Shown here: one piece after another, positions 1 through 6,400 of the stretch
How positions within the stretch are numbered: the first letter of the stretch is position 1
Layout: every line of letters starts with the position of its first letter
Assembly: GCA_028826165.1 (NCBI GenBank)
Contig: JAPDFW010000102.1
Span: 124,001 to 188,000 of the forward strand
DNA from: Anaeramoeba ignava BMAN
Taxonomy: Eukaryota > Protista > Anaeramoebae
Length of the DNA: 64,000 bases
Direction: 5' to 3'
Notes under the pieces: generated by a model
Database searches by the model: none
Told to the model about the DNA's origin: nothing
What the model saw: the letters and a program-made list of their open reading frames with translations, nothing else
Translations under genes and position numbers: made by a program

Positions 1-19
1 AAAATTGTCCACTTTCAAA

Positions 20-960
20 TATAAATTAAATTTAATTCAAATTAATTCAATTCAATTTAATATTCAATTTAATATTCAATTTAATATTTAATATTTAATT
101 CAATTCAATATTTAATATCCAATTCAATATTTAATATCCAATTCAATATTTAATTTAATATTCAATATTTAATATTCAATTCAATATTTAATATTCAATT
201 CAATATTTAATTCAATATTCAATTCAATTCAATATTCAATTCAATTCAATATTCAATATTTAATTCAATTTAATTCAATATTTAATTCAATTTAATATTC
301 AATATTCAATATTCAATATTCAATTCAATTTAATATTTAATATTCAATATTTAATTCAATTCAATATTTAATTTAATATTTAATTCAATATTTAATTCAA
401 TTCAATATTTAATATTTAATTCAATATTTAATTCAATTTAATATTTATTCAATATTTAATTCAATATTTAATTTAATATTCAATTCAATTCAATATTCAA
501 TATTTAATTCAATATTTAATTCAATATTCAATTCAATATTTAATTTAATATTCAATTCAATATTCAATTCAATATTTAATTTAATATTCAATTCAATTCA
601 ATATTCAATATTTAATTCAATATTTAATTCAATTTAATATTTAATATTTAATTCAATTTAATATTCAATATTCAATTTAATATTCAATATTCAATTTAAT
701 ATTCAATATTCAATTTAATATTCAATATTCAATTTAATATTCAATTCAATATTTAATTCAATATTCAATTCAATTCAATTCAATATTCAATTTAATTCAA
801 TATTCAATTCAATATTCAATATTCAATTTAATATTTAATATTCAATTCAATATTTAATTCAATATTCAATTTAATATTTAATTCAATATTTAATTCAATT
901 TAATTCAATATTCAATTCAATTTAATATTTAATTTAATTCAATTGAATATTCAATTTAAT
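20..960. repeat. Intronic ATATTCAATT/TTCAA-type degenerate simple-repeat array
   Basis: Nearly G-free tandem variants of aatattc/aattc/aattt. The array ends just before the acceptor AG at 985-986. Confidence 0.9.
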
Positions 961-986
961 ATTTAACATTTTCTTTTAAAAAATAG

Positions 987-3168
987 TTAAAATTATTGAA
1001 GATAAAGATGGTCTAACTAATAACTCAAAAGTTTATGAAATTGTTTCTTTTCGAAAAGACCAAATATTATCAATTCAAATTATTCAATCACCAACAGAAA
1101 ATCAAAACCAAAAACAATTTGAAGTTGAATTAAATCAAAATCAAAATCAAAATCAAAATGAAAATCAAAATAAAAATCAAAATCAAAATCAAAATCGTTA
1201 TCATCGAAATCGAAATTATGGAAGAAGTCGTGGAAGACAATATAATGATCATAAACAAGAAGAAATTGAATCAAATTGGGATATTTGTGTTGAAAGTTTT
1301 GATAAAATGGGGTTAAAAGAAGGATTATCAAGAGGAATTTATGGATATTGGTATGAAGAACCATCAATTATTCAACAAAAAGGAATTCAACCAATTATTG
1401 AAGGACGTGATGTAATTGGACAAGCTCAACCTGGAACAGGAAAAACAACTACATTTGCAATTGGTGTTTTACAAAAAATAGAGAGAAATTATTTGACTCA
1501 AGCTCTTATTCTTGCTCCAACTAGAGAATTAGCTTCTCAAATAGGTCTTGTTGTAGAAGGACTTAGTGAATATATGGATGTGAAAAGTTATGTTTGTATT
1601 GGAGGAACTGATGTTGAAAAAGATAAAGAAATGTTAAGAAAAGGTCAGAATATTATTGTTGGCACTCCTCGAAGAGGTATTTATTATTACTAAATTCCAT
1701 TTAATTTTCTAAATTCCAATTTAATTTTCTAAATTCAAATTCAATTTTCTAAATTCCAATTTAATTTTCTAAATTCAAATTAATTTTCTAAATTCAATTT
1801 AATTTTCTAAATTCAAATTTAATTTAATTTTCTAAATTAAAATAATCAAAAAAGTTATTCATATGATAATTGATGAACATTTAAAAACTGAAAATATCAA
1901 GATGTTAATTATGGATGAAGCAGATGAATTATTAAGTAGAGGATTTAAAGATCAAATTTATCAAATATTTCAAGAATTACCAAAAGATGTACAAGTATTA
2001 CTTTTTAGTGCAACAATTCCACGTTGATGTACTTGAAGTTACCAAAAAATTTATGAGAGATCCAGCAAAAATCCTTGTTAAAAAAGAAGAATTAACTTTA
2101 CAAGGAATTACCCAATTTTATGTTGATGTTAGACAAGCTAATTGGAAATTTGGTACAATTTGTGATCTTTATAAAACTATTTCAGTTACACAATGTTTGA
2201 TATTTTGTAATAAAAAAGAAGATGTTGAAGATATTGCTAAACAAATGTTAGAAAAAGATTTTGTTGTTTATAAAATGGTTTGTGTTTTTTTTTTGTTTAA
2301 TATAAAAAAAAAGAATTTTATAATATAAATATTAATAATAATAATAATATTTTAAATTATTAATTAGAAAAATGATTTTTTTTGAATATTTTCATTTTCA
2401 TTTATATTCCATTTAAAATTGACTTTGATTATTTAATTTATATTCCATTTAAAATTGACTTTGATTATTTAATTGATTTAAAATTGACTTTGATTAATTA
2501 ATTTATTTTTGATTTAAAATTGATTATTTAATTTATTTTTGATTTAAAATTAAAATTGACTTTGATTAATTAATTTATATTCCATTTAAAATTGACTTTG
2601 ATTATTTAATTTATATTTGATTTGAAATTAAAATTGACTATTTAATTGATTTAAAATTGACTTTGATTAATTAATTTATATTCCATTTAAAATTGACTTT
2701 GATTATTTAATTTATTTTTGATTTAAAATTGATTTAAAATTGACTTTGATTATTTAATTTATATTTGATTTAAAATTGAAATTGAAATTGATTAATTAAT
2801 TTTTGATTATTTTATTTAATTTATTTTTGATTTAATATTTGATTATTAAATAGCATGGAGAAACGGAACCAAGAGAAAGAGAACAAATAATAAGAATGTT
2901 TAGAAAAGGAAAGGCAAGAGTTCTTATTACAACAGATTTACTTTCAAGAGGAATTGATGTTGGAGATATACGACTTGTAATTAATTATGACTTACCACAA
3001 AAAAAAGAAAGTTATATTCACAGAATTGGAAGAAGTGGAAGATTTGGAATAAAACCAGTTGCTATTAATTTTGTTACTGAAGAAGATTTTTCAATTTTAA
3101 AAGATATTCAAACATTTTATTCAACTCAAATTGAAGAAATGCCAGGAAATATTGCAGATTATTTATAA
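987..3168 (+). CDS. eIF4A: eIF4A-like DEAD-box RNA helicase with N-terminal LSm14/Scd6-like extension (5'-partial; exons 987-1676, 1855-2277, 2854-3168; +1 frameshift near 2021)
   Basis: Spliced translation gives IESNW..SFDKMGL, Q motif (PSIIQQ), [44 protein letters not shown] and [12 protein letters not shown]. The frame is open from the acceptor AG at 985-986. Introns are 1677-1854 and 2278-2853. Confidence 0.9.
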
Positions 3169-3448
3169 ATTCATCATTTCAATTTCATCTTCTTTTTTTT
3201 TTAACTTCATTTTTCAATTCAAAATTCAAAATTCAAAATTCAAAATTCAAAATTCAAAATTCAAAATTCAAAATTCAAAATTCAAAATTCAAAATTCAAA
3301 ATTGCTTATTTTGCTCATAAAGATTAATTATGATAATTTAATAATCTTTCCAAAATAAGATTTGATTTGATTTAAATTGTTTTAAATTGAATTGATTTTA
3401 TTTTCCAAAAAAAAAATAAATTGATTTTTAATTTTTTAATTTAATTTT

Positions 3449-6400
3449 TTATTTGTAAATTAAATTTTTTGGAGAAATTAAAGAAAGTCTTTGTTTAATT
3501 AATTGATTCATTGTATTCCATTTTTCTTTTGCATTTTGAGGAAGAGTATAATCACTTTGAGTAATAGTTAAAATTAACACATCAGGATCAGGAGCAGGAA
3601 CTAAAAAAATCAAAATTCATTTATAAAATTAAAATAAGATTAAAATTCATTTATAAAATTAAAATCAAAATCAAAATTCATTTATAAAATTAAAATAAGA
3701 TTAAAATTCATTTATAAAATTAAAATCAAAATTAAAATTCATTTATAAAATTAAAATTAAAATTAAAATTCATTTATAAAATTAAAATAAGATTAAAAAA
3801 GTTCTTACTTTGGATTAATTGAGGTTCAGGTAATTTTGATAAGAAATTTGACAAAGAATCAGGAATTTGTAAATGAGGTTGTTTTTCCTTTTTCACAATA
3901 TGAGGTTTTTTTTCTCTTAAAGAAAAAATATCATCTTTTGGACTGGCAAACAAGAAGTTAAATTCTTGTAAAAAAAGATTTCCAAAATCTTCAAAACCAT
4001 TGCATAAAGTAAGTTTTTTTCCAATTTCTAAAGAATCAATTGAATCCATATAGACATTCAAAAAGTCTTGTGCAATTGGAGATGATCCCATAATATGGTA
4101 CCGTTGGATTAGAAGCGGCAAACTACTTGGATCAACATCAGGAAACGAAGAGGAAAATTTTCTTTCAAGATTTCGAATTGATTTCAAATTTCCAAATTGA
4201 TTTTCAAACAAAAAGAATTTTTTCCATATCAAAAGACTTCTGTCTCTTGATAATACTTTCAGGGCGTTCTGAAACACAGAACGGATTTGTCGAGGGTTGT
4301 AATGATGTTCCAGAAAGCTTATGTAGTCTAAAATAAAATCGGGTTCGTTTGAAAATTTATTCATTCCTTGTTCATATATATTTTTTGCAAATTCCACTTC
4401 ATGATTTATTGAGTATTCTAAATTGGCCATTGCGGAATAAACATGGAAAGTGCAATGGGGAGTTTGGTTATATTTAACAAAGCATCTTCTTGCATATTCA
4501 ACGCCTTTTGTTCGGCGAAGAAACTTGATAAATTGAATCAATCCAAGAGGTGATTTTGGACTTGATTTCAATAATTTTTCAAAAATTCCAATTGCTTTTT
4601 CAGTTTCCTTTTCAGATTCCAAGAGTTCTATATAAGAGAAGTAAAGAATCTCGCACTCTGGGTTCATTTCAATACCTCTGCGATGAAGTGCGTGTGTGAT
4701 TTTTGTGTTTGAAATTGTGTTTGCGAATTGTATTGCTTCAATCCACATGCTTGGATAATGAATCAGATATACAAGTGCCAAGTGATAATAATATAATATT
4801 TGTTTTTGGTGATTTTCTTGGAGTTTGTCTTCGAATTTTAATGGATTTGAATGGACTAATTTGATTAATTTTTTCCATAGTTTGATTTGTTGCATTTCTA
4901 TTTCTGTGTTTTTGGGTGGAAGACTAAATGCTTGATTCATATCAATCCCATTCATGCTTGTTATCATTTCTCTGTAAGTATTTCTTGCAAGCATATATTT
5001 TGGTGAGAATTTTTGAGGGTGTTTATCCTTATTCAAAAAAAAAATATTCAATTCAAATTTTTCAATAAATATTTTCATTTCAAAATTTTTTTATCTTAAT
5101 TATTTTTTTTTCAATAATAAATTTACAAAATTATCAAATTTCGTGATAAATTGTGTATATTCTCTCCAAATCATTTCAACTTGTGCCATAGGAACTGTAA
5201 TAGCTCTTTCATAAATTGATTTCAATTGTTCGTTTTTTTTCTTCTCTTTTTCCTTCTTGATTTTCTGTGATTTTATAAAATTAATATATTCAACCCAAAT
5301 CGGGGCTGATCCAATATCAAATTCAATATGATTTAACACAAATTCAAATGCTTGAATAATCATTTTATTCTGAATTTTAGGTTCAACATTTTTTCTTTCA
5401 TATTTCATAGTTGTTTTTTGATTTTCATTTGAATTTTTATCATCCAAATCCAATCCAATTTTTTTTGCATAAAATGAATTACTTAAAACAATATCTTTTT
5501 TTTCAATCACTCGATAAATATACTTTATATAAGTTATATAAAGTTTCCACAATGGAATATATTGGCAAATTAAGAGACATCTTGCAAATAATTCTTCAAC
5601 TTTTTCTAGTCTTTCTTCATATAATTCATGTTCAATCCATTGCAACCAATATTTTCCAGATGTTGGAAATACTTTTACTAATTTTGAATATATATTTTCA
5701 ACTTCTGATACTTTTTGGAATTTTATTTCTTGCATAATTTTAATCCATGCGTTTGTATCGTATTTATCTTTGTTGATTTCCTCTTCAAATTTTTTAATAT
5801 TTTGTGCAAATATTTCATTTAAATTGATGTTATCTTTTTCATTTTTGATTGGTATTTGTTCTTTTTTTGCATCTTGTGTTGTTTTTCTTCTTTTTATTTC
5901 ATTTTCACTTTCATTTTGATTTTGATTTTCATTTTCAATTTCAATTTCATTTTCATTTTCAATTTCATTTTCAATTTCATTTTCATTTTCAATTTCATTT
6001 TCAATTTCATTTTCATTTTCAATTTCATTCTGATTTTGATTTTGATTTTGATTTTGATTTTGATTTTGATTTTGATTTTGATTTTGATTTTGATTTTGAT
6101 TTTGATTTTGATTTTGATTTTGATTTTGATTTTGATTTTGATTTTGATTTTTAATTTCATTTTCATTTTCATTTTCATTTTCATTTTCATTTTCATTTTC
6201 ATTTTGATTTTTAATTTCAATTTCATTTTGATTTTCATTTTTAATTTCATTTTGATTTTTAATTTCATTTTCATTTTTATTTTGATTTTCATTTTTAATT
6301 TCATTTTCATTTTTAATTTCATTTTTAATTTCATTTTTAATTTCAATTTCATTTTCACTTTCATTTTTAATTTCAATTTCATTTTTATTTTGATTTTGAT

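Follow-up and report, generated by a model that had tools for sequence, protein, structure and literature searches.

An LSm14-type Sm domain joined in frame to a frameshifted tandem duplicate of eIF4A in Anaeramoeba ignava

The window considered here is a 64,000-nucleotide stretch of a contig of Anaeramoeba ignava BMAN (G000:C103:124001-188000), and close to its start, on the forward strand, lies a gene in which an LSm14/Scd6-type Sm domain, an asparagine- and glutamine-rich (NQ) linker and the translation initiation helicase eIF4A share one reading frame, both in the DNA and in a public gene model. The helicase part is a tandem duplicate of an intact eIF4A gene found 3.4 kb upstream of it; it is joined to the linker within a coding hexanucleotide repeat, has evolved under relaxed selection, and is interrupted in the assembly by a frameshift. 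The locus is probably a young chimeric Sm-eIF4A gene, born by tandem duplication and with its helicase half decaying, rather than a working helicase tethered to processing bodies (P-bodies). The assembly was made from Nanopore R9 reads and polished with Illumina reads (ABruijn, Racon, Nanopolish, Pilon; PMC11550330). DNA upstream of the window is numbered here as L008, a window position being the L008 position minus 4000.

Gene structure of the chimera

Window positions 980-1306 form a single open frame of 109 codons (an earlier note on this DNA had counted about 107 ahead of the annotated methionine) that contains no ATG, GTG or TTG and runs without a break into the eIF4A core. The chance of a stop-free run of this length is about 1e-5 at the window's A+T content of 82%. 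The methionine at 1307 cannot be the true start, because homology to eIF4A (IESNWD..VESFD) already begins upstream of it. The earlier note had placed a splice acceptor at 985-986 and further exon sequence outside the window, and both are there: the AG at 985-986 is a phase-1 acceptor followed by TT at 987-988, and exon 1 occupies L008:3828-3969 on the same strand, with an ATG, 47 codons and a final G directly before the donor GTTTGT. That G and the TT at 987-988 make up the split valine codon the note had predicted. Exon 1 encodes the N-terminal half of the Sm domain (IGQVIDC..KGIIYRGKI). Intron 1 (L008:3970-4986, 1,017 nt), of which the 3' 986 nt are window positions 1-986, consists almost wholly of a 12/19-nt A+T-rich satellite.

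The same splice structure, including the split valine, is found in P0001, a public 334-aa model named "eukaryotic initiation factor 4a-11 [Anaeramoeba ignava]", the one protein that a word search returned for the N-terminal segment of exon 2. The precomputed Pfam annotation of the model lists LSM14 and DEAD, and its sequence follows exon 1, Val, exon 2, Val and then exon 3 as far as the stop at 2025-2027. P0001 served for analysis of the spliced N-terminus, and the parent eIF4A and the parts beyond the frameshift were analysed exon by exon.

Exon 2 opens with strands 4-5 of the LSm14-type Sm domain, its C-terminal half (987-1099), which was assigned from the Pfam LSM14 match and an AF2 model. 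The NQ linker follows at 1100-1195 and contains a (CAAAAT)n coding microsatellite at 1132-1196, and the remainder of the exon (1196-1676) holds the duplicated eIF4A N-terminus (RNYGRSRGR, IESNWD), the Q motif and motifs I, Ia and Ib. Exon 3 (1855-2277) carries the DEAD and SAT motifs and beyond an extra T is readable only in the +1 frame. The former last exon (2854-3168), with the end of RecA2 and motifs V-VI, now lies past the premature stop, the original TAA standing at 3166-3168; the duplicated eIF4A 3' untranslated region (UTR), containing an (AATTCAA)n repeat, extends over 3169-3363. A neighbouring gene on the minus strand (window 3449-5078), with a 434-aa open exon that appears helical-repeat-like by eye, converges on the 3' end of the chimera.

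Duplication origin and probable decay of the helicase part

The intact eIF4A gene upstream has three exons and lies at L008:1587-3400. The chimera matches it with 98-99% identity from window position 1182 to about 3363, both introns and about 195 nt of 3' UTR included. A processed (retro) pseudogene is ruled out, since the copy retains both eIF4A introns. The 5' junction falls inside 1182-1195, a 14-nt identity (AT and two CAAAAT units) that corresponds to codons 4-8 of the parent eIF4A; the 3' junction lies near 3363, where homology to the parent ends, at a GATTT microhomology. Because CAAAAT is read as Gln-Asn in both genes, joining within the repeat keeps the frame. The linker and the RNYGRSRGR patch that the earlier note described ahead of the helicase core are both present, but the patch is part of eIF4A's own N-terminus and occurs in the stand-alone copy too.

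In a phmmer search of PDB sequences the helicase part (P0001:120-334) scored best with eIF4A-I/II (219-221 bits), followed by yeast eIF4A (212), eIF4A-III (206), Dhh1 (122) and DDX6 (108). It resembles eIF4A (eIF4A-I/II, yeast Tif1/2) in these scores, in exon structure and in its 98% identity to its neighbour, but differs in being frameshifted after motif III, in its altered motif residues and in the Sm domain added at its N-terminus. Three features mark the upstream gene as the likely parent: its N-terminus, with about 31 residues ahead of IESNW, has the length normal for stand-alone eIF4A; an AG acceptor immediately precedes its own ATG; and every motif is in canonical form (among them AQSGTGKT, PTRELA, GTPGR, DEAD and SAT). 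The stretch before this ATG (L008:540-1586) is about 1 kb of (TAAA)n/(TTAATAAA)n microsatellite ending in AAAATAG directly before the start codon, which suggests that the parent has a 5'-UTR intron composed almost wholly of microsatellite.

The introns of the two copies differ mainly in minisatellite copy number. Intron 2 of the chimera (1677-1854; GT..AG, phase 1) is filled with a 20-nt A+T-rich minisatellite and is 81 nt longer than its counterpart in the parent; intron 3 (2278-2853; GT..AG, phase 0) is filled with a 36-nt A+T-rich minisatellite and is longer by about 100 nt. The repeats occupy window positions 1690-1843 and 2396-2848, and L008:2092-2188 and 2611-3085 in the parent. Such differences between copies that are 98% identical indicate that satellite length changes faster than point substitutions accumulate.

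In exon 3 of the assembled copy the frame is broken beyond SAT (motif III) by one additional T at 2024/2025, and the resulting TGA at 2025-2027 is the end of the 334-aa model, so that RecA1 alone is in frame and the RecA2 (Helicase_C) exon is readable only in another frame. Across the 404 codons shared with the parent there are 5 synonymous and 19 non-synonymous differences (dS 0.021, dN 0.020), giving a dN/dS of 0.95 from small counts. Relaxed selection is nevertheless a robust result, since a gene under the constraint of eIF4A should show about one replacement at this dS. The two copies differ by 15 residue changes, and with eIF4A-III of the same genome as the polarising outgroup all 13 polarisable ones map to the window copy, the parent having none.

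In exon 2 the derived changes are E>G, a G>W that precedes the Q-motif region, S>P in motif I (1430), an A>T beside motif I and a G>R (1670) that turns GTPGR into GTPRR. Those of the last exon are M>T, M>I, QQVS>GDIR (7 of 11 nt, 2962-2972) and RKG>IKP (3050 and 3055-3056), and it is in this exon, now untranslated, that changes are densest (12 non-synonymous versus 2 synonymous). P0001 still matches the DEAD domain with an E-value of 4e-43 and retains GKT, PTRELA, DEAD and SAT, alongside the S>P, G>W and GTPRR changes derived on this copy.

Young chimeric genes formed by DNA-level duplication and fusion are a recognized class that includes the jingwei- and Sdic-type new genes of Drosophila. 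The Anaeramoeba locus resembles them in having its parent intact next door, in keeping the introns, in its in-frame junction at microhomology and in the early relaxed selection on the recruited part. It differs in that the junction lies in a coding hexanucleotide microsatellite present in the same phase in both partners, and in that the recruited part is already frameshifted, making this a likely failed or failing new gene.

The Sm domain and its LSm14-like paralogue

The earlier note had called the N-terminal part an LSm14/Scd6-type Sm domain and had looked to the upstream exon for the missing half of the fold and for a profile match; both were found, in favour of the assignment. The two exon halves each match Pfam LSM14 (PF12701) weakly and colinearly (profile positions 3-35 and 50-74), and joined as P0001:1-95 they match it with an E-value of 2.3e-6 and 28.0 bits over positions 3-74 of 75, just under the gathering score of 30 bits. 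In the same Pfam scan SM-ATX scored far lower and the canonical LSM family was not among the matches. A features search of the ESM Atlas ranked Scd6-like Sm clusters first (0.87, 180/256 features), and the Atlas's own model of the Sm part aligned to an LSM14A cluster with a TM score of 0.70. The AF2 model, from an alignment of only three rows and with the other four models poor, has a pLDDT of 72.9 and an Sm fold with a helix at residues 7-11 and strands at 18-23, 28-38, 41-52, 63-70 and 74-81. The top three Foldseek matches of this model in the PDB were 6f9w (LSM14), 2vxf (RAP55) and 2vxe (Tral), with E-values from 5.5e-5 to 9.4e-5.

A phmmer search of the Sm part against 1.84 billion representative proteins returned only the protein itself, word searches with regions 1-110 and 1-95 of P0001 found no protein but P0001, and phmmer against PDB sequences gave only weak matches to SmD3 (E 0.16).

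Within the genome, the Sm exons have one other copy, on contig C61, to which they are 55% and 44% identical and with which they share a phase-1 intron at the same position. The C61 gene (G000:C61:545886-547722, plus strand; exon 1 at L010:1507-1630, exon 2 at L012:1493-2325) encodes an Sm domain, which a satellite-filled intron of about 880 nt interrupts, and then a linker rich in Q, N and Y; beyond it FFD and TFG boxes can be read by eye, and the tail is rich in Arg and Asn. A weak PF12701 match of its exon 1, these boxes and the LSM14-like clusters ranked first by Atlas features (0.88, taken as a lead only) point to a fuller LSm14/Scd6-like gene, of which the Sm exons in the window would be an old paralogue. 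A Pfam scan of its exon 2 gave no FDF match, and a PDB search with the FFD-TFG stretch gave no match. A word-based protein database search with the C61 paralogue returned no match, not even itself, and the public proteome may therefore lack the gene or model it wrongly. The divergence of the two Sm paralogues, set against the 98% identity of the helicase part to its parent, implies that the Sm part is far older than the helicase part. A dN/dS of 0.87 between the two paralogues was dropped as uninformative, synonymous sites being saturated and constrained at 82% A+T.

Like LSm14, Scd6, RAP55 and Trailer hitch, the chimera starts with a divergent PF12701-type Sm domain and continues into a low-complexity linker. 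Unlike them, it lacks FDF, FFD and TFG boxes, the known DDX6-binding elements, nor does it have its own RGG tail. Pfam detected no FDF match in P0001, the sequence after the linker being eIF4A, and a tblastn search with the C61 paralogue for a remnant of an LSm14 C-terminus near the locus found the Sm half only. In LSm14 it is the FDF/FFD-TFG region, and not the Sm domain, that binds RecA2 of DDX6 (for example PDB 6f9s and 6f9w). The combination of an LSm14-type protein with a DEAD-box helicase recalls the non-covalent repression complexes LSm14-DDX6, Scd6-Dhh1 and CAR-1-CGH-1; here, however, the helicase is of eIF4A type, its RecA2 is out of frame and the FDF/FFD-TFG region is absent.

Separate genes for the relevant partners are all in the genome: a stand-alone eIF4A, a DDX6 and the LSm14-like gene, which the earlier note had proposed looking for, and an eIF4A-III (on contig C13). 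The DDX6/Dhh1 gene (G000:C145:26,764-28,700, minus strand; L025) has many short exons, the motif ARAKNGTGKT and a long N-terminal extension rich in Pro/Tyr/Asn and in His, and its best PDB matches are p54, Dhh1 and DDX6. Other candidates for DDX6 were ruled out, on contigs C35 (Dbp5/DDX19-like), C137 (DDX3/DDX23-like), C1 (DDX39/Sub2-like) and C46 (ambiguous). The C35 locus (G000:C35:627,000-636,500) holds three tandem Dbp5/DDX19-like DEAD-box copies at a spacing of about 3.6 kb, with open frames of 322-405 aa.

Origin and possible products of the locus

The history that probably accounts for the locus would begin with an older, diverged LSm14/Scd6 paralogue, its two exons encoding the Sm domain and the Asn/Gln linker, that directly followed the housekeeping eIF4A gene. 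Duplication at the DNA level would have copied about 2 kb, from codon 4 of eIF4A onward, together with both introns and about 195 nt of 3' UTR, and the copy would have been joined to the linker inside the CAAAAT repeat by recombination or template switching, with the frame kept automatically. With the parent eIF4A intact next door, the helicase part would have been free of selection since the event and would then have gained about 2% substitutions at a dN/dS near 1, as well as the +1 frameshift after motif III. The locus as it stands would make at most a protein of 334 aa, with the Sm domain, the NQ linker and a mutated RecA1 half-helicase, and such a protein could not work as a DEAD-box helicase. 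The premature stop precedes the last exon junction by 250 nt, so the mRNA may also be a target of nonsense-mediated decay (NMD). The earlier note had suggested that the gene may be a lineage-specific fusion tethering an initiation helicase to the P-body and decapping machinery, and made no mention of the frameshift, the changed helicase motifs or the parent gene. The fusion architecture is borne out; a functional tether is not supported, given a duplicate at a dS of 0.02 with a dN/dS of 0.95, a frameshift, lost motif residues and no FDF, FFD or TFG.

Were the frameshift an assembly or polishing error, the gene would encode a full-length Sm-eIF4A of about 490 aa with a new, perhaps ATPase-independent role, such as an RNA clamp or pseudo-helicase brought to LSm14 partners. 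The splice sites, DEAD, SAT and the original stop are indeed intact, one inserted base is the sole break in the frame of an assembly derived from Nanopore R9 reads (PMC11550330), and nearly all replacements lie on this copy, so that a branch-specific dN/dS could exceed 1. The inserted T, however, lies outside any long homopolymer and 6 nt from a copy-specific single-nucleotide variant, a setting that polishing with short reads ought to have resolved; under neutral decay at 2% divergence about 1-2 indels per 1.2 kb are predicted, as is seen. In addition, GTPRR, the P-loop Ser>Pro and IKP strike residues conserved in the DEAD-box proteins compared and in the literature, and the last exon carries the densest changes, as would be the case for untranslated sequence. 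We therefore consider an intact full-length fusion unlikely. It is likewise doubtful that the truncated 334-aa product is functional, whether as a decoy or adaptor displaying the eIF4G/PDCD4-binding surface of RecA1 on an Sm domain or as an Sm protein with a passenger tail. Public annotation predicts the protein, the start codon and inherited 3' UTR are intact along with the Sm exons and splice sites, and the Sm paralogue, which long predates the fusion, probably functioned as a gene beforehand. Against this, the product is known only as a prediction from a gene model, conserved positions of the in-frame RecA1 part have already changed (S>P, G>W and G>R), a premature stop that precedes an intron suggests NMD, and no relative of the Sm paralogue appears among the 1.84 billion representative proteins.

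Several points weigh against a chimera in decay. Changes are sparser upstream of the frameshift, where 216 codons hold 6 non-synonymous and 2 synonymous differences (dN/dS 0.76 on 8 changes), a pattern that also favours a functional truncated product, and the overall ratio of 0.95 has a wide interval. The clustered changes at 2962-2972 and 3055-3056 (GG>CC) are atypical of simple decay by point mutation; a template for the former was sought, in direct and inverted orientation, within 3 kb and in the fetched loci without success, the 3055-3056 site not being included in that search. Use of the 986/987 junction, expression and the single-base insertion are attributed to the gene on the basis of the assembly and the public gene model, and residual indels are possible in near-identical duplicates of a Nanopore R9 assembly. 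With the Sm exons and all splice sites intact, the N-terminal part may still be in use.

The order of events could also be reversed, the Sm-eIF4A fusion having been the ancestral working eIF4A that decayed after the stand-alone upstream gene arose as a new copy. Two copies alone do not give the direction of duplication, and the Sm part is old; yet the upstream copy has the normal-length N-terminus, an ATG after an AG acceptor (likely of a 5'-UTR intron) and every canonical motif, and as a new copy it would have had to acquire by chance a promoter, a start codon and the correct frame, whereas repeat-mediated fusion keeps the frame automatically. Reversal therefore appears very improbable. A misassembly, by collapse or chimerism of haplotypes or repeats, would mean that no fused gene exists in the cell, and a locus rich in satellites and near-identical duplicates is hard to assemble. 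The copies nevertheless differ at 24 coding positions and in intron repeat numbers, unlike a collapse, and 42-74% of sampled 31-mers of L008:3780-7200 are present in contigs built from four DNA runs of this organism, more than the part shared with the parent could supply, although the runs are probably from the source sample and so do not constitute independent support. There is little reason to expect that an artefact of this kind produced the tandem arrangement, and its likelihood is put at close to nil.

Taken as a chimera formed by tandem duplication, the locus offers a clear example of a coding microsatellite common to two unrelated genes fusing them in frame in one step, with the parent gene, both junctions and the first 2% or so of divergence all still readable. 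It illustrates the usual sequel, in which the recruited domain decays at once while the parent remains intact. For annotation, it would be wrong to treat "eIF4A-11" as a functioning paralogue of eIF4A or to cite it for an LSm14-helicase fusion in this lineage. There is a small chance that the 334-aa product, with its catalytically dead RecA1 half, is expressed and has been co-opted as a regulator, decoy or adaptor linking eIF4A-binding partners to LSm14-type repression or decapping partners. If so, a newborn gene would have been caught within about 2% divergence of its origin and, should the truncated product prove to be both expressed and selected, it would represent a rare newborn Sm-domain regulator.

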